From positions 278,608 to 342,607 of IMG/VR virus record IMGVR_UViG_3300020469_003050: DNA of 64,000 nt; one strand, written 5' to 3'. Positions within the stretch are counted from its first letter, which is position 1. Every line of letters starts with the position of its first letter. The position numbers were made by a program, and so were the translations under genes. Positions 1 to 63,567 of the stretch are shown in pieces. Under the pieces are notes generated by a model. The model searched no databases and was not told the DNA's origin. It saw only the letters and a list, made by a program, of their open reading frames with translations.

Positions 1-118
1 ACACGACCACTTAATGGGTATAACATTTGATAAGAGAGCAAAGACAAGTCAATTAAGTAGAGCATTAGCAATACGTAAAGAGAAACTAAAAAGAATTAAA
101 AAGAGAAGTAAAGATTAA
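1..118 (+). CDS. def: Peptide deformylase, 3' end (gene begins before the window)
   Basis: Frame 2 reads HDHLMGITFDKRAKTSQLSRALAIRKEKLKRIKKRSKD*, matching the PDF HExDHLxG..F.DR motif and basic C-terminal helix; stop overlaps ATG at 118. Confidence 0.65.
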   Translation, partial: HDHLMGITFDKRAKTSQLSRALAIRKEKLKRIKKRSKD

Positions 119-1044
119 TGGACTATTCCAACTATACATTACTAACCGTAGGGTGTAGTTTTACTTTTGGACAAGGCGCAGTTCCGCATTTCGATAAAAG
201 TAAGTCAACTCCTGAGAATAATGAAGCTAGAGATAGATGGCGTAAAGAATGTAACTTACTTTCTTATAGTCAAAGAGTTAAAGAAATAGTAAAATTTAAA
301 AAAGTTGTTAACTTGGGTACACCTGCAGGAAGTAATGAACTTGCTTTACTCAATATGAATACTTGGTTGGATAAAAATAAAGGTGAAAATGTTTTTGTAT
401 TATTCAGTTTAGCTGATCCACAAAGAGAAATGTTCTTTACTAAGAATAAAATTAGTAGACAACCAGATGCTTATGGATTAGAAGTATTCAATGTAAATCA
501 CACACAAGGTTTACATCCTAACGTAATAGAAGGTTTCTATACATATATTAATACTGACCTTAATATGACATTTAAGAACTGGATATTTAGAAAACAACTA
601 AGTTCAATATTGAGTTATAGAAATTTACCGAACTTAGTATTTCATGCTTATGACCCAATGGATATTAGAATTACTAAATTAAGAAAAATATTTAAATTAA
701 CTGAAGGTACTACGCATTGGCATGATTTAGATATTATATCAGACTTTATACAATGGATGGAAACAATAGAAGATGAACCTACATTTGAAAATTATATAAG
801 CATTAACAAAATTAAAGAGTGGGCCCTATCAGAAGACTGGTCTAAAGACCTAAAAAATATAATAAAAATAGAAGATTACTTACAAGCATATTGTAAAAGA
901 AACAAAAGACACCTCTTTGCACACAAAACACAGTACGGTAACAGAGGAGAAGCATATTCACCTTTCGATAATGCTCATTATAATAAACAAGCACATGTGA
1001 TTTTAGGTGACAAATTGTCGCAAGAAATACACAAAATCAGTTAA
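118..1044 (+). CDS. SGNH/GDSL-hydrolase-like phage protein
   Basis: GCSFTFG block I, NLGTPAGSN block II, C-terminal DNAHY (DxxH). Confidence 0.55.
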   Translation: MDYSNYTLLTVGCSFTFGQGAVPHFDKSKSTPENNEARDRWRKECNLLSYSQRVKEIVKFKKVVNLGTPAGSNELALLNMNTWLDKNKGENVFVLFSLADPQREMFFTKNKISRQPDAYGLEVFNVNHTQGLHPNVIEGFYTYINTDLNMTFKNWIFRKQLSSILSYRNLPNLVFHAYDPMDIRITKLRKIFKLTEGTTHWHDLDIISDFIQWMETIEDEPTFENYISINKIKEWALSEDWSKDLKNIIKIEDYLQAYCKRNKRHLFAHKTQYGNRGEAYSPFDNAHYNKQAHVILGDKLSQEIHKIS

Positions 1045-2214: not shown

Positions 2215-2568
2215 ATGAAAACATCAATTATCGGACTGCTAGTCGCAGTCTTTTTTTCTGCAACGGCGTTTGCAGAAGACACAAGTGTATCAAATGATAT
2301 TTCTTGGTCTCTAACATTAGAGAGACAAACAGAAGCAAATGCTAATACAGGCGAACTAATGGGGACTATGGAAGTTTTAGGACTTGATGTTTCTGCGGGT
2401 GGACTGTGGAACATTGATAAATCAGGTGAAGATTTTATTGACTTGAATAAAACGATGTTAAATGTTAGCCACTCGCTTTCTGACCAAGCAAAAGTGTATC
2501 TAAAGAATGACTTTAGTACAGATTGGGACAGAACTGAGTCAACAATAGGTCTACAAATTACGTTTTAA
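2215..2568 (+). CDS. Secreted small beta-barrel outer-membrane-protein-like protein
   Basis: AAGGAGG RBS, signal peptide (MKTSIIGLLVAVFFSATAFA), alternating beta strands, C-terminal IGLQITF with terminal Phe. Confidence 0.55.
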   Translation: MKTSIIGLLVAVFFSATAFAEDTSVSNDISWSLTLERQTEANANTGELMGTMEVLGLDVSAGGLWNIDKSGEDFIDLNKTMLNVSHSLSDQAKVYLKNDFSTDWDRTESTIGLQITF

Positions 2569-2606
2569 TTTGTTGACAAAAACACCTCTATAGTGTATAA
2601 ATATAG

Positions 2607-2885
2607 ATGTTAACGTTGAAGCAAGTTCAACACTATACAGGACCTGGGGGCAGTACCCAGCAGGTCCACCATAAACACATTATCAGTTTGCATTAGTGTG
2701 TTTATGATGGGCCTGAACTAGGATCGACTGGTGGTTAATAGGCGAGTGGAGTTAACCGAGTGACTTCGTTATTGGTCAAACACTATAATTGCAAACGACA
2801 ATTATCAGCCAGAAATGGCAATGGCGGCCTAATTTAGGCACGTAGGGGTTGGTGACTTGCCTGGCAACAGAAAAGTCACATTTTT
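2607..2885 (+). ncRNA. ssrA: Circularly permuted (two-piece) tmRNA, tag ANDNYQPEMAMAA
   Basis: T-arm plus CAGGTCC-ACCA (2661-2671) lies upstream of GGGCCTG (2709-2715), forming an acceptor stem with G3.U70; hairpin intervening segment 2672-2708; tag ORF 2791-2832; promoter TTGACA(2573)-17-TATAAA. Outer boundaries approximate. Confidence 0.93.
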
Positions 2886-2908
2886 ATTTGGGAGTGGGTT
2901 TTTTGTAA

Positions 2909-3247
2909 ATGGCATACGTAGTAACGCAAGATTGTATAAAATGTAAGTATACTGATTGTGTGGAAGTTTGTCCCGTTGATTGCTTTTATGAGGGCAAAGA
3001 TACTTTAGTTATTAACCCAGATGAATGTATAGATTGCGGTGTTTGTGAACCCGAATGTCCTGCAGAAGCAATAATTCCTGATACGCATGAAAAATTTACA
3101 ATGCGACTCTACGATATAAATAAAAAGTGGTCAGAACAATGGCCAGTAATTACAGAAAAGCAAGATCCCTTACCTGATGCTGATTCACTAAATCCAGCAA
3201 TGGGATATTCAGAAGATAAGACAAAGTTGTTAGATGAATACGATTGA
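2909..3247 (+). CDS. fdxA: 7Fe/8Fe ferredoxin (FdxA family)
   Basis: [18 protein letters not shown] and [16 protein letters not shown] motifs. Confidence 0.93.
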
Positions 3248-24357: not shown

Positions 24358-25799
24358 TGAATGATAAAACTTTCTGCATTGCTCCATGGCATGATGTTCA
24401 TATTATAACAGACGGAACATTCAAAGGGTGTTGCGTGATGAACCACGGAGAAGTAGGAGGGAGACTTTTAACTAACGGTGTTGTTCACACAGTAACAGAT
24501 AGTGGTGTGAATGGTGCAATGAATTCTGATACAAGTAAAGAATTAAGATTAGATATGCTACAAGGTAAATGGCATACTAATTGCACACGATGTAAAAATG
24601 AAGAAGCATCTGGTATGCGTAGTATGAGACAGTTATACGGAGACAGATGGAAAAACTTTACATACAAAGATGCAGAGAAAATAACTAATTTAGATACTGG
24701 CGAAATACCAGTAGACCACAAACCTTTCTATTATGATATTCAGTTAGGTAATTTATGTAATCTTAAATGTAGAATTTGTAATCCACTAGTTAGTTCTGCT
24801 TGGATACCTGATTACATGAAAATGATGAGATTAGGTAATAAAGCTGAGATTAAAGTAAGAGGCGGTAAGAAACCTTTTAAGATTGATATTGAACACGTAA
24901 AAGGTAAACAATATAATATTTCACCTAATCCATTTGCGTGGGCAGAGTCAGATGAATTTTGGGAACAAATGTCTGCTATTAAAGGAGAGATTGACCATCT
25001 ATATTTGATTGGGGGCGAACCAATGATGATTCATAGACACTTTAAGTTTTTAGAAGAATGCGTAGAAAGTGGTGATGCGAGTCATATTACATTACAGTAT
25101 GATACTAACTTAACAAACATTCCTGAAAAAGTTATGGGATATTGGTCTCATTTTAAATCTCTAATGATTGGTTTTAGTATTGATGGCATGGGTCCAGAGT
25201 TAGAATACATGAGACACCCTGTAAAGTGGTCGCATATTCTTAGAAATATAAACAGAGTAGAAGAATTTGCAAAGAAAAATGATAACGTTAAGTTAAATGA
25301 TTCTATCACAATCAATACATATAACGTACTTCATATACTTGATTTCATTGAATGGAAAGTAAAAGCAGGTAAAAATGATTATGAATTTTTATGGCAATGG
25401 CATGATGAGAACTTTTGTGCCCATCCATTGCATGGTCCTGATTTTTTGTGTGTTAAGACTATGCCATTGAGTGCTAAAAAATATGTTACTCAGAGATATT
25501 ACGAATGGCGTGATAAAATGCATGAATGGTGTGATAGTATTGATTACTACACAAAGAGGCGTAAACCAGAAGATATCAAAATTGCAGTAACTAAGTTTGT
25601 CGATAGATGGGTAGAATTCATCAACCAAGAAGATTGGTCTCATAGAGTATGGAAATTCTGGGAGTATACGAATGACCTAGATGAAGTCAGAGGTGAGAAT
25701 TTTAAAGAAGTATTCCCTGAACTTGCTAAGATTATGTGGGATTATCCAAAGAAACCTAGCTGGATGTTTGCCCCTACGAATACGTATCCAACAGAATAA
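24357..25799 (+). CDS. Radical SAM protein with N-terminal twitch/SPASM-like domain
   Basis: CNLKCRIC; FCIAPW, GCC, CTRC; GGEP; SIDG. Confidence 0.9.
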   Translation: MNDKTFCIAPWHDVHIITDGTFKGCCVMNHGEVGGRLLTNGVVHTVTDSGVNGAMNSDTSKELRLDMLQGKWHTNCTRCKNEEASGMRSMRQLYGDRWKNFTYKDAEKITNLDTGEIPVDHKPFYYDIQLGNLCNLKCRICNPLVSSAWIPDYMKMMRLGNKAEIKVRGGKKPFKIDIEHVKGKQYNISPNPFAWAESDEFWEQMSAIKGEIDHLYLIGGEPMMIHRHFKFLEECVESGDASHITLQYDTNLTNIPEKVMGYWSHFKSLMIGFSIDGMGPELEYMRHPVKWSHILRNINRVEEFAKKNDNVKLNDSITINTYNVLHILDFIEWKVKAGKNDYEFLWQWHDENFCAHPLHGPDFLCVKTMPLSAKKYVTQRYYEWRDKMHEWCDSIDYYTKRRKPEDIKIAVTKFVDRWVEFINQEDWSHRVWKFWEYTNDLDEVRGENFKEVFPELAKIMWDYPKKPSWMFAPTNTYPTE

Positions 25800-46675: not shown

Positions 46676-49522
46676 ATGAAGTGTTATCCACATAATGATT
46701 ATTATAGATCCGATGAATTAGAAATTGTTCCAAAACTTCTAATTGCATCTAAGGCATCTAGTGAAGTCCTTCGGTCAGTAATGGCTGAGGCAGAAACCAT
46801 TCAATCTAAACTTACCGATGAACATTATTTGACTCATATAATGAAGTCATATGATATGAGTGCTCCTGAGGGCATGGCACTTATGACTCTTTGTGAATCT
46901 CTTTTACGTACACCAGACAAAGAAACACAAGACAAACTTATCAAAGATAAATTATCAAATGCAGAATGGTATAAATTATCTAATAATAGTTTTTATTCTA
47001 AAGCGGCCAGTATTGCATTAACTCAGGCACAAATGCTTTCAGCATATGAAGGTATAGTAGGAAGAATAGGCTGGCCAGCAGTAAGAGAAATGACAAAGAC
47101 TATGGTAAAACAAATGGGTACTTTATTTGTTATGGGTAGCAACATAGAAACTGCAATAAAAAATAAGAAAAAAGGTTATGCATATTCATTTGATATGCTA
47201 GGAGAGGCCGCAACAAATTGGGAAGATGCAAATTTATACTATGAAAGATATTTAGATGCGGCTATTAAGTCAAAAGAATCCATATCTATAAAACTTAGTG
47301 CAATACACCCTAGATACGAATTAAAGAACCACAAAGACGTTTTACACACACTAGTACCTAAATTAGCCGCTATAGCTAGAGTATGCGAAGAAAACAACAC
47401 TACAATGTTTATTGATGCAGAAGAGGCACGTAGGCTCGATATAAGCATTATGATACTTGAAGAAATGCTTAAAACATACAAATTTAAAGATTTTACTATA
47501 GGATTTGCTCTACAGGCTTATCAGAAACGTGCTTTTTGGGTTATTGATACGTTAGAGACAATAGCAGAGCATAGTAGCGCCAAACTCGTTATACGGCTTG
47601 TTAAAGGCGCATATTGGGACACTGAGATAAAGTATTCACAACAAGAAGGACTAGATTATCCAGTATTTACAAGAAAAGAGAATACAGACATATCTTATCT
47701 AGCATGTACTAAAAAACTGATGCATAGTGAAAGATTGAAAACTGCATATGCTACACATAATCCATATACAGTTTCAGCAATACAATGTGTTGGTAAATGT
47801 AGTAAGCAAGAATATGAATTTCAGAAACTTTACGGAATGGGTGATAGTTTATTCAGTCAGATAGTAGGAGATACGAAAGTCAGAGTATATGCACCAGTCG
47901 GTGAGTATAAAGATTTATTAGCATATCTAATAAGACGTTTATTAGAGAATGGTGCTAACACTAGTTTTGTTCATACAAATGAAGTTGTAGATCCTTTTAA
48001 AGAAGTTAAAAAGAAAAAGAAATCACTTAAGTCATGGAAAGATTTATATCCTGGAAGAAAGAATAGTAAAGGATATGATTTAACTGATCCAGCTATGGTT
48101 GATTATATGTTAGACTCTGCGGTTCACCCTCACCATGATGAAGAATTACTTTCAGTGGAAGATAGTATAGAACATTTATACAACTATCAAAATCAATGGG
48201 CAAATACAACATTTGAACATAGAAAGAAAATTCTACTAGCATGTGCAGATAGTTTAGAAGAAGAAATGATTCCTGCGGCAAACAGATTAGTAAAATATTC
48301 TTTTAAAACATATCCAAATGCAGTTGCAGAAATTAGAGAGTCAGTTGATTTTATTCGTTACTACGTAGAACAAGCTGAATTAATGTATGGAGAAAATATC
48401 AAAATAGGTTATACCGGTGAATATAATTCTACAGTTTTTAATCCTAGAGGAACTTGGATGGTAATAGCACCTTGGAATTTTCCTTATGCAATTTTCTTAG
48501 GACCAATCGTAGCCGCATTGATTACAGGAAATACCGTATTGGCAAAACCCGCACCACAGACCCTAGAAATTGCAAAAGTTGTATTGGGTGCAATGCATCA
48601 CGTTGGTGTACCAATAGATGCACTACGTATGTGTGACCCTGATATTGAAGAGGCTTCTAAAGCAATCAAAGATGAACGTATATCAGGTATAACGTTCACA
48701 GGCTCTCATAAGAGTGCTAAGACTATACAGAGGCTTATTGCTGAACGTGATGGGCCTATTATACCTTTCATTGCAGAAACAGGTGGTATAAATTCTATGA
48801 TTGCAGATTCTACTTGTTTACCTGAACAGTTAGTCGAAGATGTATCATATGGTGCATTCGATAGTGCAGGACAAAGATGTTCAGCAACTAGATTTTTATT
48901 TCTTCAAAAAGAAAATAGTGAAGAAATTATTAATATGTTAAAACATAAAATTAAAGTAATATCACTTGGTAATGCAGATGATTTAAATACAGACGTATCA
49001 CGTGTTATTGATGGTGTGGCATATGCAAAGATACAAGAAAGAATTGCAGTACTTGAAGAAAACGAAACATTAATTGCAACGAAATCTCGTAATGGAAAAG
49101 AGTTACCAAAATTAATTATCCCACCAAGTGCTTATCTTGTAACAGACTACAAAAAGTATTTTGATGAAGAAATATTTGGCCCATTGTTGCATGTTTATGT
49201 TTATGAAAAAGATGAATTAGATGAAATAGTATCTTTTATAAATGAAAGTAAATTTGGACTAACATTAAGTATACATTCACGTGTAACTAAGTTCTATGAT
49301 AACATAGCTAAGAAAATGAAGATAGGTAACATTTATATAAACAGAGACCAAATAGGTGCAGTTGTAGAGACTCAACCATTCGGTGGATACGGTTTAAGTG
49401 GTACTGGACCTAAAGCAGGTGGTCCTAATTATCTAACTCCTTATGTGTGGGAGAAACACATAAGCATCAACACTTCTGCTATCGGCGGAGACACTTTGTT
49501 ATTGACTTCTGAACCTCGATAG
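46676..49522 (+). CDS. putA: Bifunctional proline dehydrogenase / P5C dehydrogenase
   Basis: SFDMLGEAA, SIKLS, RLVKGAYWD, ATHN, RRLLENGAN, PWNFP, ETGG, FDSAGQRCSA, PFGG.GLSGTGPKAGG. Confidence 0.96.
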   Translation: MKCYPHNDYYRSDELEIVPKLLIASKASSEVLRSVMAEAETIQSKLTDEHYLTHIMKSYDMSAPEGMALMTLCESLLRTPDKETQDKLIKDKLSNAEWYKLSNNSFYSKAASIALTQAQMLSAYEGIVGRIGWPAVREMTKTMVKQMGTLFVMGSNIETAIKNKKKGYAYSFDMLGEAATNWEDANLYYERYLDAAIKSKESISIKLSAIHPRYELKNHKDVLHTLVPKLAAIARVCEENNTTMFIDAEEARRLDISIMILEEMLKTYKFKDFTIGFALQAYQKRAFWVIDTLETIAEHSSAKLVIRLVKGAYWDTEIKYSQQEGLDYPVFTRKENTDISYLACTKKLMHSERLKTAYATHNPYTVSAIQCVGKCSKQEYEFQKLYGMGDSLFSQIVGDTKVRVYAPVGEYKDLLAYLIRRLLENGANTSFVHTNEVVDPFKEVKKKKKSLKSWKDLYPGRKNSKGYDLTDPAMVDYMLDSAVHPHHDEELLSVEDSIEHLYNYQNQWANTTFEHRKKILLACADSLEEEMIPAANRLVKYSFKTYPNAVAEIRESVDFIRYYVEQAELMYGENIKIGYTGEYNSTVFNPRGTWMVIAPWNFPYAIFLGPIVAALITGNTVLAKPAPQTLEIAKVVLGAMHHVGVPIDALRMCDPDIEEASKAIKDERISGITFTGSHKSAKTIQRLIAERDGPIIPFIAETGGINSMIADSTCLPEQLVEDVSYGAFDSAGQRCSATRFLFLQKENSEEIINMLKHKIKVISLGNADDLNTDVSRVIDGVAYAKIQERIAVLEENETLIATKSRNGKELPKLIIPPSAYLVTDYKKYFDEEIFGPLLHVYVYEKDELDEIVSFINESKFGLTLSIHSRVTKFYDNIAKKMKIGNIYINRDQIGAVVETQPFGGYGLSGTGPKAGGPNYLTPYVWEKHISINTSAIGGDTLLLTSEPR

Positions 49523-49562: not shown

Positions 49563-50084
49563 ATGAGCGATAAATTACACATATCTTGGGATAGATATGA
49601 AGAAGAAATCGAAAAATTAGCTATAATGGTTCACGAAGATGGATACAAATTCAATCAAGTAGTTTGTATTGCAAAAGGTGGATTAAGAGTAGGAGATATT
49701 TTTGCTAGATTATTTGATGTACCATTAGCAATAATGTCAGTAGAATCATATCATGGTGATGAAGTAAAGGATCAAAGAGGACAAATTATCTTTGGAAATT
49801 CTCTTGCTAAAACAACTCCTAACATAGGTAGCAAAATTTTATTAGTAGATGATTTAGCAGATTCTGGAACAACATTTGAGAAGTGTGTAGAATGGTTACA
49901 ATTCACAGAAGGTTTTTTCATTGAAGATATTAAAACTGCGACAATGTGGTTAAAAGGAAGTTCATCATATACACCAGACTATTTCGTAGAATATTTGGAA
50001 GACAACCCATGGATTGTTCAGCCAATGGAAAAATACGAAGAAATAAATATAGAACAACTTATAAAGAACAGGGAACAACAATGA
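49563..50084 (+). CDS. Xanthine/guanine-type phosphoribosyltransferase
   Basis: ISW, CIAKGGL, LLVDDLADSGTT, PDY, WIVQP. Confidence 0.8.
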   Translation: MSDKLHISWDRYEEEIEKLAIMVHEDGYKFNQVVCIAKGGLRVGDIFARLFDVPLAIMSVESYHGDEVKDQRGQIIFGNSLAKTTPNIGSKILLVDDLADSGTTFEKCVEWLQFTEGFFIEDIKTATMWLKGSSSYTPDYFVEYLEDNPWIVQPMEKYEEINIEQLIKNREQQ

Positions 50085-50494
50085 GTAAACAGGTAGACTT
50101 AAATAAATACAAAGAGTTTGTACAAGAGGTTACATCAAAGCAGTCAGGCAATACAGACGAACTAACTGCGACTCTTAAAAAACTTGATGAAGAAACAGGC
50201 GTCAATATGGCGTTGCTTATGACAGGTGCAATCGGCATTGCATCAGAGGGAGGCGAGTTCAGTGAGATTGTTAAGAAATGTGTATTTCAAGGTAAACCAC
50301 TTGATAATGAAACTATCTTTCATTGTAAACGAGAACTTGGTGATATTATGTGGTATTGGGTTAATTCTTGCCGTGCATTGGGTTTGGATCCTAATGACGT
50401 AATGGCAGAGAATGTTGAAAAACTAAAAGCAAGATATCCAGGCGGAGAGTTTGATGTTTACTATTCAGAAAATAGAAAAGAAGGAGATTTATAA
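50081..50494 (+). CDS. MazG-like NTP pyrophosphohydrolase
   Basis: EGGEFSEIVKK, RELGDIMWY, NVEKLKARYP. Confidence 0.9.
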   Translation: MSKQVDLNKYKEFVQEVTSKQSGNTDELTATLKKLDEETGVNMALLMTGAIGIASEGGEFSEIVKKCVFQGKPLDNETIFHCKRELGDIMWYWVNSCRALGLDPNDVMAENVEKLKARYPGGEFDVYYSENRKEGDL

Positions 50495-50594: not shown

Positions 50595-51080
50595 TTGATT
50601 GAAGATATTAAGAAGTGGATTGAGGATTTTGTGTCAGTACACAACGAACCTATTGGGCATGTGCCATGTCCTTTTGCGAAACAGGCAATGCTCAAAGAGA
50701 GAATCAACTATGTATCAGGAGGAAAGCATACTATATCACCTCTGCTTGATTCTCTCGCTGAGAACTGGGACGACAAATATGAAGTTGTAGTTCTCTACTG
50801 TCCTACGGAAGATTACACGCCAGAAGAACTTTCAAAAATTGTAAAAGATTTCAATGATGTTGCTATGAGTAAAGATATAGTAGCACTTGAGGATCATCCT
50901 AATGACCCTGAAATACTTAGTGGCGAAAAAATGAACTACGGTAAAGCTATATTAGTCTTAGTTCAGAGACTATCAAAATTAAATCAAGCAAGTAAAATAC
51001 TAAAGAAACAAGGGTATTATGATAAATGGCCTGATGAAAATTACGATGATGTTGTGAAATGGAGATTTGATAAGGAATAA
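50595..51080 (+). CDS. CPF-motif protein (DUF1415-like)
   Basis: WIEDFV...PCPFA, LEDHP. Confidence 0.55.
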   Translation: MIEDIKKWIEDFVSVHNEPIGHVPCPFAKQAMLKERINYVSGGKHTISPLLDSLAENWDDKYEVVVLYCPTEDYTPEELSKIVKDFNDVAMSKDIVALEDHPNDPEILSGEKMNYGKAILVLVQRLSKLNQASKILKKQGYYDKWPDENYDDVVKWRFDKE

Positions 51081-51105
51081 ATAGATGTAACTTAGGAGTT
51101 ACAAT

Positions 51106-51531
51106 ATGACAACTTATGCCCGAATAGACCTAGCACAAACTAATTATTCTGTTATACCAAATTGTAGATTTTTGAAAGAACCAAACATACCTGAACTTAA
51201 TGAAATCTATAAAACATATTGTAGACATAAAGGTTTTAAAAGTGTAATGCCAATGTTCGATAATGATTATTTGCAAAATGATATTATTGGATATTATGAT
51301 GAAGAAGATAAACTTGTTGCATTCAGTTGTATTATGATACAAGACCATGAAAGTGTTGAAGCATTGCAGTTTGCTTGGGATTACAAAACTCCTAAATTAC
51401 ATTTAGGTATAAAAAGTTTAAGAAATGAATGTGCAATATATAAAAGTAAAGGTTACAAATATTTGTATTTAGGCGAAGCACATAGTTATAAGAAACAGAT
51501 AAAAGGATTTGAGATACTAGGACCCATTTAA
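51106..51531 (+). CDS. Stand-alone ATE_C-like (aminoacyl-tRNA:protein transferase, GNAT fold)
   Basis: YKTYCRHK, KLVAFS, FAWDY...LG..SL..E, GYKYLYLG...YK..IKGFEIL follow the ATE/Bpt C-terminal domain pattern. Confidence 0.6.
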   Translation: MTTYARIDLAQTNYSVIPNCRFLKEPNIPELNEIYKTYCRHKGFKSVMPMFDNDYLQNDIIGYYDEEDKLVAFSCIMIQDHESVEALQFAWDYKTPKLHLGIKSLRNECAIYKSKGYKYLYLGEAHSYKKQIKGFEILGPI

Positions 51532-51878
51532 TGGACATATATACAATCTACGCAGACCATAGTGAGGAAGTAAATTCTTATCATTTTGCTAAAAAGATGA
51601 AATTGTTTTTAGATAAAATGGTAGAGTTAGGACATATGGAAAGTTATAGACTTACAAGAATGAAATTAGGATTTCGTTCTATGGACTTACCTGAATTTCG
51701 TATCGATATGGAATTCAAAAACATGCAACAACTAGACGATGCAATGACAGGAGTGTTACGTAATGAAGAAAACATTGAGGGAGAACATGTTGGATTTAAT
51801 CATATGGTAGACGTAACAACAATACAACATTTTTTATATAGAGATTTCCCAGATGAATTACCGAATAAACAAGATTAA
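51531..51878 (+). CDS. Dimeric alpha-beta barrel-like protein (DUF6614-like)
   Basis: YRLTRMKLGF, EF.I.MEF..M.QLD.A, LYRDFPD. Confidence 0.5.
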   Translation: MDIYTIYADHSEEVNSYHFAKKMKLFLDKMVELGHMESYRLTRMKLGFRSMDLPEFRIDMEFKNMQQLDDAMTGVLRNEENIEGEHVGFNHMVDVTTIQHFLYRDFPDELPNKQD

Positions 51879-53091
51879 TTCTTATAACGGTTGGGACCCA
51901 TTGAAACAAGTTATTCTTGGCAATGTGTTTGAACCTGAGTTCTTTGAAGACTTGCCAGATACTAGAACAAGAGACTTGATACAACAACTTCTTTACGAAA
52001 CACACGAAGATTTAGATAACATACAAAAGACTATGGAAGACATGGGAGTTGATGTTGTTAGAACACCTGCTAATGCAACTATGTTAGCAGACTTATCAGA
52101 CGGGTTACCTCAAATATCTAAACATACATCAGTAATGGATTGGGTAGAAAAATCAAATACAGACAAGTTTCAAGGTCATGGTATTCCAAAACCTTGTTTA
52201 TCTCCTAGAGATTTCTTTATTTCGATGGGAGATAAAGTTTTATACACTAATGGATTTCATCAATCTAAAGGTCTACAGGTAAATGGACAATCTTTAATAA
52301 ATCCAGAAGTTTTAGATATGAGATTAAAAGGCGATGAGTATACATTTGGTAGATTTATTCCTTCTAAATCATACATGGAAGACAATGGACTTCCAGTAGA
52401 TTGGCTTAGTTGGAATGCACATGAACGTAAAAAAATGGAAAGTGTAAGAGGTAATCAAGTAGCAAGATATAAAGCATCTACTCAAATGTTTTGGGCACCA
52501 ACTATAACACGTATTGGTGATACATTAATTATAGATAAAAAAGATGTTATAAATTTACCAGAAGTAATAAGTGAATTATATCCAAATTATAAAACTCCTC
52601 ATGTCGCTATTGGAGGACATAATGATGCTACATTCTGCACCCCTAAACCTGGTCTAGTAGTATGTGCTCCATGGCTTAAACCAGAGCATTTTAAAGAAAC
52701 ATTTCCAGGCTGGGATATATTAAGAATAGAACATCCTAATCAAATGCAATCAGATTGGGGTGACTGGCAAAACGAAAAACACTTATCACAAGGTAGATGG
52801 TGGCATCCTAAACAAAAAGATAATAAAGCATTTGCAAGATTTGTAGATGCATGGTTAAGTAAATGGGTTGGTTATGTAGAAGAAACAGTATTTGAAGTTA
52901 ACATGCTAAGTGTTTCACCTGATGTTATTTTATCTTTAAATTATCAAAAGGAAGTGCATGACAAATTGAAGCAACATGGAATAGAACCTGTCTATTGTCG
53001 TTTTAGACACAGAAATTTTTGGGATGCAGGGTTACATTGTTTGACAGTTGATACAGTCAGAGACGGTGGAATGCAGAATTATTTTGAATAA
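51853..53091 (+). CDS. Amidinotransferase (pentein superfamily)
   Basis: NSYNGWDPLKQVILG, PRD, HND, FEVNML, GLHCLT.D..R. Confidence 0.85.
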   Translation: MNYRINKINSYNGWDPLKQVILGNVFEPEFFEDLPDTRTRDLIQQLLYETHEDLDNIQKTMEDMGVDVVRTPANATMLADLSDGLPQISKHTSVMDWVEKSNTDKFQGHGIPKPCLSPRDFFISMGDKVLYTNGFHQSKGLQVNGQSLINPEVLDMRLKGDEYTFGRFIPSKSYMEDNGLPVDWLSWNAHERKKMESVRGNQVARYKASTQMFWAPTITRIGDTLIIDKKDVINLPEVISELYPNYKTPHVAIGGHNDATFCTPKPGLVVCAPWLKPEHFKETFPGWDILRIEHPNQMQSDWGDWQNEKHLSQGRWWHPKQKDNKAFARFVDAWLSKWVGYVEETVFEVNMLSVSPDVILSLNYQKEVHDKLKQHGIEPVYCRFRHRNFWDAGLHCLTVDTVRDGGMQNYFE

Positions 53092-55796: not shown

Positions 55797-56120
55797 ATGG
55801 CACAACTAAGACCGTTGGGAGACCGAATTCTATTAAAGAATTTGGATAAAGGGGAAAAGACAACAAAGGGTGGAATCATCGTTCCAGATGATTCACAAAT
55901 GTCCGCAGGTGAACGTGGCATCAGACCACGTTGGGCTCAAATCTATGCAGTAGGACCTAGACAAGAATCTGTACAAGCAGGTCAATGGGTTCTTATGGAA
56001 CATGCAAGATGGACAGAAGCACATAAAGTAGAAATCGATGGTGTAGAAACTGAGATTTGGATGGGTGATCCAGAAGGTATGTTAGGAACAAGTGAGACAA
56101 AGCCAGACGATGTAGCTTAG
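55797..56120 (+). CDS. groES: Co-chaperonin GroES-like
   Basis: LRPLGDRILL, TKGGIIVP, AVGP, G.WVL. Confidence 0.85.
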   Translation: MAQLRPLGDRILLKNLDKGEKTTKGGIIVPDDSQMSAGERGIRPRWAQIYAVGPRQESVQAGQWVLMEHARWTEAHKVEIDGVETEIWMGDPEGMLGTSETKPDDVA

Positions 56121-63033: not shown

Positions 63034-63118
63034 GCCTCCTTGGTGGAATAGGTAGACACAAGAGACTTAAAATCTCTCGCCTCAAGGCGTCCCGGTTCAA
63101 GTCCGGGAGGAGGCACCA
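63034..63118 (+). tRNA. tRNA-Leu(TAA)
   Basis: Cloverleaf with long variable arm, AGAGA-CT-TAA-AA-TCTCT, encoded CCA. Confidence 0.96.
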
Positions 63119-63122
63119 ATAT

Positions 63123-63198
<76 letters not shown>

Positions 63199-63206
63199 TC
63201 TTAAAT

Positions 63207-63476
63207 GTGAAAGGAAACATTATGGAATGCACATACACATATGAATTTACAGTAGATGAATTTGGTCGACCCGGCGGCATGTATAGTTTGGCTGATTTGC
63301 CTATCGTTGCTATCAAAGAACTAACTCGTACTGGAACTATTATTACACAAGATAGTGTAAATAAACTTTACGAAATCAAAGACAATGGACGTGACCCAGG
63401 AGGTTTTACAGTGGTCGTTCCAATGAAAGATGTAGTTCTTAATGAAGAGGATTTTCATAATCCTACACCATCTTAA
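63207..63476 (+). CDS. Hypothetical protein
   Basis: ORF track between tRNAs; true start may be slightly downstream. Confidence 0.55.
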   Translation: MKGNIMECTYTYEFTVDEFGRPGGMYSLADLPIVAIKELTRTGTIITQDSVNKLYEIKDNGRDPGGFTVVVPMKDVVLNEEDFHNPTPS

Positions 63477-63490
63477 ATATCACAATAATT

Positions 63491-63567
63491 GCTTTCGTAG
63501 TTCAACTGGATAGAACAGCCGACTTCTAATCGGCAGGTTGAGGGTTCGAGTCCTTCCGAAAGCGCCA
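63491..63567 (+). tRNA. tRNA-Arg(TCT)
   Basis: GCCGA-CT-TCT-AA-TCGGC, GGTTCGA, CCA. Confidence 0.96.

Follow-up and report, generated by a model that had tools for sequence, protein, structure and literature searches.

We examined a 64,000-nucleotide window of a marine jumbo phage genome (IMG/VR record IMGVR_UViG_3300020469_003050) and focused on four adjacent, co-directional genes, which we refer to as g1 to g4:

50595-51080 (+), g1, 161 aa, TTG start: probable thiolate-haem protein, inferred from fold prediction and sequence
51106-51531 (+), g2, 141 aa: stand-alone ATE_C-type GNAT lobe, putative aminoacyl-tRNA-dependent aminoacyl transferase
51531-51878 (+), g3, 115 aa: DUF6614 protein, a small ferredoxin-like alpha+beta barrel
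51853-53091 (+), g4, 412 aa: divergent AGAT/StrB1-type amidinotransferase-like protein
63491-63567, tRNA-Arg(TCT)

Gene structure

The four genes were first noted from the sequence alone, and that observation was confirmed: the genes, their overlaps, and their motifs are all present. The N terminus of g1, which begins with TTG, matches homologs that start with ATG. An AGGAG lies before g2. The stop codon of g2 and the start codon of g3 overlap in a TAATG at 51529-51533, while the ATG of g4 at 51853 is 26 nt inside g3. The g1 protein contains PCPFA (residues 24-28) and DHP (residues 100-102), and the g4 protein contains PRD (118-120), HND (256-258), and LHC (394-396). The tRNA-Arg(TCT), which the original prediction had raised as a possible clue, is unremarkable, since it is one of 10 tRNAs in the genome, including two for Arg and two for Leu.

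Family assignments and predicted folds

The family assignments in the original prediction (a CPF-motif protein, an ATE-like transferase, a DUF6614-like protein, and an amidinotransferase) largely held. The g1 protein scored below the Pfam cutoffs for DUF1415 (17.2 bits against 26) and DUF6875 (PF21780; 15.8 against 24.5), had no hit to YqcI/YcgG (PF08892) at E ≤ 1, and returned no meaningful hit in a sequence search of the PDB. When 35 family members were searched, 21 hit DUF6875 (best E of 2e-5), 13 hit DUF1415, and 2 hit YqcI/YcgG (E of about 0.05). Thus, g1 is closer to DUF6875 (cytochrome P422), which acts on tryptophan, and to DUF1415 than to the guanidine-hydroxylating YqcI/YcgG family. 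An AF2 model of g1 was of high confidence (pLDDT 93.4), suggested a phage branch of the DUF6875 (P422)/DUF1415/YqcI-YcgG thiolate-haem sandwich fold, and had AFDB hits to DUF6875 and DUF1415 at a probability of 1.0. The YqcI/YcgG haem enzyme AglA (9ub3) was the only PDB representative with Z ≥ 5 (Z of 5.9 to 6.3, 152 of 161 residues aligned), although a Z of about 6 is middling by the calibration of the search method, and g1 is about 80 residues shorter than AglA.

Two residues of g1, Cys25 (in GHVPCPFAK) and His101 (in LEDHP), are invariant. AglA Cys44 and Mc170 Cys58 are axial haem ligands. Cys25 lies about where AglA Cys44 falls, but this placement was judged from the aligned ranges (1..161 and 23..224) without a residue-level superposition. 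Compared with the P422 haem motif RxGxVCP, g1 reads I-G-H-V-P-C-P, in which the G, V, C, and P are kept, one Pro is inserted, and the Arg is absent. By inspection, none of the P422 Trp-binding motifs, SBR1 (Rx(M/L)x3Dx2F), SBR2 (Dx2(Q/H)x3K), and SBR3 (MxGxF), was recognizable in the g1 consensus, where only an M-N-F-G segment loosely recalls SBR3. It is possible, although we consider it unlikely, that g1 is not a haem enzyme but a Cys25/His101 thiol enzyme or a metal- or redox-sensing subunit within a nonoxidative transferase system. In favor of this view, the invariant residues across the wide superfamily, including cyanophage and roseophage homologs at 25 to 30% identity, include one Cys and one His. 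In addition, g1 is much smaller than AglA or P422 and lacks the haem-motif Arg, and distant homologs of g1 occur without g2. Against it, the same N-terminal Cys is the axial ligand in both characterized families that share the fold, and the conserved K29, R125, and R157 could hold the haem propionates.

The g2 protein passed the Pfam ATE_C (PF04377) threshold (29.3 bits against 25, E = 1.4e-6), and many family members carry PF04377 in precomputed annotation. It shares the FxWD...LG...E...YLYLG...YK pattern of ATE_C proteins. However, it had no ATE_N hit at E ≤ 1, and longer relatives also lacked ATE_N at E ≤ 0.01. A match to the NCBIfam bacterial arginyltransferase (E = 3.7e-5) scored 23.5 bits, far below the equivalog cutoff of 252, with only residues 62-138 matching positions 144-224 of the 241-position model. 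A PDB profile search recovered ATE1 (E = 0.067), and an exhaustive search of 1.84 billion proteins returned only ATE_C proteins as relatives. The AF2 model of g2 (pLDDT 89.5) is a single GNAT lobe whose structural matches include MprF (Z = 14.8), FemX (13.9), ATE1, and Sba18 (12.5). The best of these matches are the second lobe of tandem-GNAT enzymes. The original prediction would have been weakened if g2 modeled as an ordinary acyl coenzyme A (acyl-CoA) GNAT. By inspection, the segment that would hold the Q/R-x-x-G-x-G/A pyrophosphate-binding loop between beta4 and alpha3 reads N-P-K-L-x-L-G-I-K-S, with no G-x-G/A. Yet structure does not separate g2 from acyl-CoA GNATs, as NMT scored 14.5, and the fold alone does not exclude CoA use.

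The resemblance to MprF raises the possibility that g2 uses aminoacyl-tRNA to modify a membrane lipid or envelope component and thereby changes host surface charge during infection. The top structural matches are the Lys-/Ala-phosphatidylglycerol synthase domains of MprF (E = 7e-7), and there is a weak Pfam LPG_synthase_C hit (E = 0.11). Nevertheless, we regard this as very unlikely, because g2 has no membrane domain and only one GNAT lobe, is ATE_C rather than DUF2156 at the sequence level, and would leave g1 and g4 without a role. Alternatively, g2 could act like Bpt/ATE1 on the N termini of host or phage proteins as an N-degron writer. In this scenario, g1 would either prepare the N terminus by oxidation, as Cys oxidation precedes arginylation in eukaryotes, or serve as a haem/O2/NO-sensing partner. 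This reading is consistent with ATE_C and the bacterial arginyltransferase/Bpt family being the only sequence families that g2 hits and with the presence of ClpX in a related jumbo phage that carries g1-g2. It is also unlikely, however, given the absence of ATE_N and the low equivalog score. Furthermore, the longer ATE_C relatives that we examined are not next to g1, and the link to an amidinotransferase and a DUF6614 barrel has no counterpart in N-degron pathways.

The g3 protein matched DUF6614 (PF20319) over its full length (81 bits against 25, E = 8.4e-23), and its structural neighbors in the Atlas are EthD, Dabb, and DUF1330. The g4 protein had no Pfam hit, but a PDB profile search recovered only amidinotransferases (AGAT at 1.8e-10, SxtG, StrB1, and HsvA), with no deiminase or DDAH at E ≤ 0.01. 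The original prediction described its D/H/C motifs (PRD, HND, LHC) as intact, and these motifs are present. C396, H256, D120, and D258 align with the catalytic Cys and His and the two substrate-binding Asp residues of AGAT (C407, H303, D170, and D305). All but D120 are invariant in the family, with Asn in the branch designated L008. In contrast, the triad Asp of AGAT (D254) aligned to W214 (FWAP against FDAA) in two independent alignments. Trp occupies this position in 9 of 10 aligned members, while the tenth, L008, has Asp there but PRN in place of PRD.

Conservation of the cluster

The original prediction would have been undermined had the genes not been co-conserved in related phages. Instead, co-conservation was strong. 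In 53 nonredundant phage loci, g1 accompanied g2 in 53, g3 in 40, and g4 in 23. The orders included g1-g2, g2-g1, g2-g3-g1, and convergent arrangements, in at least four unrelated genomic contexts, and g3 was found on either side of g4 or between g2 and g1. This recurrence is well beyond chance. The four-gene form was scattered over the g2 tree, where well-supported branches force at least four changes. The obligate core is therefore g1 plus g2, with g3 a frequent accessory and g4 an optional but recurrent member. Amidinotransferase paralogs were found elsewhere in 4 of 4 genomes whose cluster lacks an adjacent g4. More generally, g4 belongs to a large, mostly viral clade with two to five paralogs per jumbo-phage genome.

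The g1-g2 pair occurs in at least 553 IMG/VR phage contigs, and the g2 family counts about 3,000 metagenomic protein clusters. Carriers include cosmopolitan marine jumbo phages. The region recurs at over 95% word identity in metagenomes from at least nine studies, and fragments 100% identical to it occur in marine metatranscriptome libraries. However, g2 had no hit in 50,697 cultured phage genomes, where g1 had only homologs at 24 to 29% identity, annotated as hypothetical, in cyanophages and a roseophage. A search of cellular genomes returned four loci. Two of these, on Haliscomenobacter MAG contigs (L029 and L030), look like phage contigs, and a Chloroflexota hit (L032) is only a weak partial match. 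PADLOC defense-system models gave no hit. We found no paper describing an ATE-like or amidinotransferase module in phages.

We considered whether other genes or fusions belong to the module. An apparent natural fusion of g2 and g3 (P0170, ATE_C plus DUF6614) proved to be a read-through with a frameshifted g3. No convincing fusion of g2 to g1, g3, or g4 appeared in the exhaustive search, in which hits of 225 to 274 aa were ATE_C proteins with an unknown N-terminal extension and no g1 neighbors. Radical SAM/SPASM genes recur near the module, but this genome alone has 17 radical SAM hits and the closest relatives of the window have none nearby, so we treat them as genomic background or synteny. 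Among PutA, PRT, and MazG, only adjacency to MazG held, and only in the nearest relatives.

The genomic setting also bears on whether the module could modify nucleic acid. In this view, which extends the mechanism of Mom, g2 would place an amino acid from aminoacyl-tRNA on a DNA (or RNA) base, and g1 and g4 would then oxidize or amidinate the appendage to give cationic, restriction-resistant phage DNA. Mom is a viral GNAT that transfers Gly from Gly-tRNA to adenine N6 in double-stranded DNA. In many loci, the module sits among DNA metabolism genes (gp46/gp47, SegE, a helicase, MazG, and PRPP synthase), and in this genome a g4 paralog lies beside TerL, gp32, and UvsX. An amidinotransferase has also been detected in the virion proteome of cyanophage S-SCSM2R. 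Despite these associations, we consider the hypothesis unlikely. Mom was not among the top structural hits of g2, which at 141 aa has no room for the essential HTH-like insertion of Mom and has a pI of about 6.9 rather than a basic one. Furthermore, no base-flipping or DNA-binding domain is present in the module, and the neighboring DNA genes reflect synteny within one T4-like lineage.

Proposed function of the module

The original prediction proposed an arginine- or guanidine-centered pathway, and this interpretation was partly supported; none of the three conditions that it had named as refuting it was fulfilled. Co-conservation, the ATE_C signature of g2, and the predicted fold that g1 shares with AglA and DUF6875/P422 were each consistent with it. 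However, the arginine framing is not established, because the amidinotransferase is adjacent in only 23 of 53 loci, g1 is nearer to DUF6875 and DUF1415 than to YqcI/YcgG, g4 lacks the triad Asp of AGAT, and no particular amino acid can be assigned to g2.

Our favored, though tentative, explanation is a phage-borne tailoring cassette with a two-enzyme core that may build or decorate an as yet unidentified molecule. In this model, g2 would take an aminoacyl group from a charged tRNA and place it on an amine or hydroxylamine of an acceptor. The g1 protein, with Cys25 as the axial ligand, would hydroxylate a nitrogen or carbon of the same molecule, either before aminoacyl transfer, as in valanimycin, or after it, as in argolaphos. 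Where present, g4 would transfer an amidino group from arginine, through Cys396, to a primary amine of the substrate or intermediate, making a guanidine and releasing ornithine, while g3 would assist the haem step. The gene structure, family and fold assignments, conserved residues, and co-conservation were demonstrated by our analyses, whereas the haem cofactor, the aminoacyl-tRNA donor, the acceptor, the order of steps, and the product are inferences made without a biochemical datum for any member. The model is also weakened by the absence of an encoded Fer2 ferredoxin in the genome and by the lack of a transporter or other typical biosynthetic-cluster genes accompanying the module.

A more novel but improbable alternative is that the module acts on a macromolecule rather than a metabolite, as a multienzyme, tRNA-dependent hypermodification system that installs an aminoacyl group on phage DNA or protein N termini, which may then be oxidized and, where g4 is present, amidinated. 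If true, g1 would be the first viral thiolate-haem enzyme and g2 a second class of viral tRNA-dependent modifier after Mom. Aminoacyl-tRNA-dependent GNATs and non-P450 thiolate-haem enzymes are both rare, recently recognized chemistries, known mainly from actinomycete natural products. Here, putative minimal versions of both are locked together, and abundant ocean viruses thus appear, on this inference, to run an unknown oxidative, tRNA-consuming reaction during infection. Identifying the product would add a new viral metabolic or modification pathway, give a function to DUF6614 and to the viral branch of DUF1415/DUF6875, and supply very small (141 and 161 aa) scaffolds for biocatalysis.

Comparison with known systems

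Individual members of the module resemble characterized enzymes to different degrees. Phage Mu Mom (PMC13219725) is a viral single-domain GNAT that uses charged tRNA as the acyl donor, but it works alone on double-stranded DNA, and no specific similarity to g2 was detected. The Bpt and ATE1 aminoacyl-tRNA-protein transferases share the ATE_C signature, but g2 is about half the length of Bpt. AGAT, StrB1, SxtG, and HsvA are the only PDB families that g4 hits, and the N-terminal WDPL, PRD, HxD, and C-terminal HC motifs align, with the nucleophilic Cys kept despite the Trp at AGAT Asp254. The cytochrome P422 (DUF6875) Trp hydroxylases/C-S synthases (bioRxiv 10.64898/2025.12.11.692455) are the nearest named sequence family of g1 and have an alpha/beta sandwich, as predicted for g1, with a Cys in a motif that g1 keeps only in part, and g1 is shorter.

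The closest precedents for the pairing itself couple an N-oxygenase with a tRNA-dependent GNAT. In the valanimycin pathway (VlmH/VlmL/VlmA), N-hydroxylation is followed by O-aminoacylation, in which VlmA, an MprF-like enzyme of the MprF/ATE superfamily, moves serine from aminoacyl-tRNA onto the hydroxylamine. There, however, the oxygenase is a flavoenzyme and a dedicated SerRS paralog is encoded, neither of which was seen here. The argolaphos pathway (PMC8976061, PMC12866846) belongs to an actinomycete phosphonate gene cluster with PEP mutase and other genes, whereas no phosphonate genes were seen beside the phage module. Its AglA/AlpD is a YqcI/YcgG thiolate-haem guanidine N-hydroxylase of about 240 to 270 aa, and AlpF is a 342-aa Acetyltransf_6-type enzyme rather than a 141-aa ATE_C lobe. 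Even so, the argolaphos cluster encodes a Cys-ligated haem enzyme of the sandwich fold predicted for g1 together with GNAT aminoacyl-tRNA peptide ligases (AlpF/AlpO), and its haem enzyme, the best solved structural match of g1, acts on the aminoacylated product (AMPn-Arg).

Genomic setting and gene organization

The virus record is complete at 342,607 bp, has direct terminal repeats and 34.8% G+C, and so belongs to a jumbo phage; the window is its last 64 kb. The observation behind the original prediction was confirmed; the four open reading frames lie exactly where it had placed them, all on the + strand:

50595-51080 (+), g1, a probable Cys-heme oxygenase inferred from sequence and predicted fold
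51106-51531 (+), g2, a putative ATE_C-type transferase
51531-51878 (+), g3, a DUF6614 protein
51853-53091 (+), g4, an amidinotransferase-like protein

The genes g2 and g3 share the sequence TAATG, and the ATG of g4 lies 26 nt inside g3. The TTG start of g1 is backed by ATG-started homologs with the same N terminus.

Other features of the window include the following:

2560-2923 (+), permuted alphaproteobacterial-type tmRNA (Rfam alpha_tmRNA, 122.6 bits; tag ANDNYQPEMAMAA)
about 24741-25280, one radical SAM gene
46676-49522 (+), full-length bifunctional PutA (DNA-binding domain, proline dehydrogenase, and P5C/aldehyde dehydrogenase; 948 aa)
49563-50494 (+), phosphoribosyltransferase (173 aa) and MazG pyrophosphatase
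55797-56120 (+), GroES/Cpn10 cochaperonin
63034-63567 (+), cluster of tRNA-Leu(TAA), tRNA-Glu(TTC), and tRNA-Arg(TCT)

The phosphoribosyltransferase and MazG genes lie directly upstream of the module and are codirectional with it. A consensus scan found no strong promoter (best internal matches, 9 of 12) and no +-strand terminator inside the four-gene block, but an 11/12 promoter-like site lies upstream of the PRT-MazG genes. PutA is encoded just upstream of the module, although it is not conserved next to the module in other phages. In contrast, the GroES/Cpn10 gene, a few genes downstream, is conserved in the closest relatives. The tRNA cluster lies close to the genome end, and the genome has 10 tRNAs in all. 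The tmRNA hints at an alphaproteobacterial host; phage tmRNAs of this kind are reportedly discussed for pelagimyophages and Melnitz phages (PMC9004378). The radical SAM family is greatly expanded in this one phage genome, with 17 hits, of which 13 are above the Pfam cutoff.

Predicted identity of the four proteins

We first classified g2. It passes the Pfam gathering score for ATE_C (29.3 against 25 bits), with a weak second hit to LPG_synthase_C. NCBIfam returned bacterial arginyltransferase (the Bpt family) at an E value of 3.7e-5, but this corresponds to only 23.5 bits against a cutoff of 252 and covers only the last third of that model. A family profile found ATE1 in the PDB at an E value of 0.067, aligning the FxWD...LG...E...YLYLG core. 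An N-degron writer is a rival, less likely reading of g2. The AF2 model (pLDDT 89.5) is a single GNAT lobe. Foldseek ranked the Lys-/Ala-phosphatidylglycerol synthase domains of MprF first (E = 7e-7), and ATE1 and the tRNA-dependent peptide synthase Sba18 also appeared; MprF-like lipid aminoacylation is a further alternative. Structural alignment with VIA-align gave Z scores of 14.8 for MprF, 13.9 for FemX, and 12.5 for Sba18, but also 14.5 for N-myristoyltransferase, and the match was always to the second lobe of a tandem-GNAT enzyme. Structure therefore does not separate tRNA users from CoA users, and the assignment rests on the ATE_C sequence signature and on the absence of a G-x-G/A CoA loop. 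An exhaustive HMM search of 1.84 billion representative proteins found only 189 relatives, which are stand-alone forms of about 145 aa plus proteins of 225 to 274 aa that also carry only ATE_C.

The g1 protein has only subthreshold Pfam hits, to DUF1415 (17.2 bits) and DUF6875 (15.8 bits). Even so, among 35 family members, 21 hit DUF6875 (best E = 2e-5), 13 hit DUF1415, and 2 hit YqcI/YcgG. The AF2 model is confident (pLDDT 93.4), and Foldseek against AlphaFold DB returned DUF6875 and DUF1415 proteins at a probability of 1.0. In the PDB, the best match is the arginine-conjugate N-hydroxylase AglA. In a Foldseek-independent scan of 48,161 chains, AglA was the only representative with a Z score of at least 5 (Z = 5.9 to 6.3; 152 of 161 residues), a value that is moderate by the method's own calibration. 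Language-model neighbors are viral DUF1415/DUF6875-like clusters. DUF6875 was recently characterized as "cytochrome P422," a Cys-ligated heme family that acts on tryptophan and has the heme motif RxGxVCP, while AglA uses Cys44 as the axial ligand in a four-stranded sandwich. The g1 protein has an invariant G-x-V-P-C-P-x-A motif, and its conserved basic residues K29, R125, and R157 could hold the heme propionates.

Distant g1 homologs (24 to 29% identity, with the same invariant Cys and His) occur as hypothetical proteins without g2 in Synechococcus phage Sf-CH11 (64318-64743) and other T4-like cyanophages and in Roseobacter phage CRP-345. In the cyanophages they sit next to a 2OG-Fe(II) oxygenase. 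This implies a wider, uncharacterized viral branch of the DUF1415/DUF6875 fold. Across these cyanophage and roseophage homologs, the invariant residues reduce to W8, C25, P26, A28, A31, H101, Q124, and Y142. A nonheme Cys/His role for g1 is an alternative to the heme reading.

The g3 protein is a clear DUF6614 (E = 8e-23), and its structural neighbors are EthD, Dabb, and DUF1330 alpha+beta barrels. The g4 protein has no Pfam hit. However, as a single sequence, and better as a profile, it matches only amidinotransferases in the PDB (AGAT, 1.8e-10; SxtG; StrB1; and HsvA). The nucleophilic Cys (C396), the His (H256), and both guanidino-binding Asp residues (D120 and D258) align, whereas the position of the triad Asp254 of AGAT is Trp214 in nine of ten aligned members. 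g4 belongs to a large clade that is mostly viral.

Co-conservation of the module in phage genomes

To characterize how often the four genes occur together, we collected loci with two protein scans of IMG/VR and a g2-profile scan. The profile scan confirmed at least 553 contigs encoding a relative, of which 80 were kept. We built HMMs for the four proteins, searched six-frame ORFs of all loci, and then reduced the set to one locus per 95%-identity g2 cluster with at least 2.5 kb on both sides. Of the resulting 53 loci, g1 lies within 3 kb of g2 in 53, g3 in 40, and g4 in 23, and all four genes are present in 13. Gene orders vary and include g1-g2-g3-g4, g1-g2-g4-g3, g2-g3-g1, and g2-g1, as well as arrangements with g4 or g1 on the opposite strand.

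The genomic contexts also differ. The module was found in MazG/PRPP-synthase neighborhoods, in a T4-like portal-baseplate...gp46/gp47 neighborhood, in helicase neighborhoods, in radical-SAM-rich neighborhoods, and in a 325-kb phage contig with ClpX and IF3. Radical SAM/SPASM genes recur near the module in several other phage lineages. Adjacency of MazG to the module is kept in the closest relatives (loci L023, L036, L040, and L041). Among these, L036 and L041 also have an upstream gene of ~328 aa, annotated as PRPP synthetase in L036, and L036 has an RpiB on the other side of the module. Despite our preference for a tailoring function, a multienzyme DNA hypermodification on the model of Mom remains a rival explanation.

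On a g2 tree, the four-gene form is scattered. Well-supported branches force at least 4 changes, and the deepest lineages have all four genes, which fits an ancestral four-gene unit with repeated loss or relocation. We checked four large genomes whose cluster lacks an adjacent g4. All of them carry amidinotransferase-like genes elsewhere, 2 to 5 per genome, including a 415-aa g4 ortholog about 100 kb away. The window's own genome has a second paralog outside the window (genome positions 221352-222386; locus L035, 6352-7386), which encodes 344 aa with 26% identity to g4 and sits immediately upstream of the T4-type large terminase (TerL), gp32, and UvsX/RecA genes. As a rough estimate, with about 3 copies among about 400 genes, chance adjacency to the g1-g2 pair would be a few percent, not 43%.

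Distribution, expression, and previous descriptions

The region recurs at 96 to 99% of sampled words in marine and viral metagenomes from at least 9 studies. Fragments 100% identical to it, covering PRT, MazG, g1, g3, g4, and the next gene, occur in contigs from marine metatranscriptome libraries. However, DNA carryover cannot be excluded, and two of the data sets (X15 and X16) look like one data set filed twice. g2 was absent from 50,697 cultured phage genomes, and PADLOC returned no match. In 185,579 species genomes, only four loci appeared, one of them (the fourth) a weak partial match. Two others are contigs of 148 to 183 kb from a "Haliscomenobacter sp." MAG (L029 and L030; NZ_JBBAKG010000003.1 / ...001.1), which carry Portal_T4, baseplate, and gp46/gp47 genes and the g1-g2-g3 module. 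They share many genes with this phage and are probably jumbo-phage contigs binned into a bacterial MAG. Literature searches found no description of this module, although one paper notes amidinotransferase genes in a cyanomyovirus, one of them detected in the virion proteome.

Proposed mechanism and comparison with characterized pathways

The original prediction was of an arginine/guanidine-centered module, and our results support this interpretation only in part. Three outcomes had been named in advance as counting against it, namely, that the genes are not co-conserved in related phages, that g2 models as an ordinary acyl-CoA GNAT, and that g1 has no structural relation to heme CPF proteins. 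None of the three was observed. Nevertheless, "arginine/guanidine-centered" overstates the evidence. g4 is adjacent in under half of the loci and has an atypical triad, g1 is nearer to the Trp-oxidizing P422 family and to DUF1415 than to the guanidine hydroxylases, and the tRNA-Arg(TCT), which had also been noted in the window, is one of ten tRNAs.

The invariant couple is a probable Cys-heme oxygenase plus an ATE_C/MprF/Fem-type transferase, and two characterized pathways use the same logic. We therefore favor, tentatively, a tailoring cassette in which tRNA-dependent aminoacyl transfer and heme-dependent hydroxylation would act on one substrate. In this view, an optional amidino transfer from arginine would add a guanidine, and an EthD-like helper would assist the heme step. 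EthD is needed by a P450 system. Heme binding, tRNA use, the amino acid used, the acceptor, and the product all belong to the inference and not to what the analysis itself shows.

The coupling of tRNA-dependent aminoacyl transfer to N-oxygenation is already known; if the module works in this way, what is new is its setting and its minimal form. In the argolaphos pathway, the cluster encodes a YqcI/YcgG enzyme together with GNAT "peptide aminoacyl-tRNA ligases," and AglA hydroxylates the guanidine of the aminoacylated product AMPn-Arg. In the valanimycin pathway, an N-hydroxylated amine is O-serylated from Ser-tRNA by the MprF-like VlmA.
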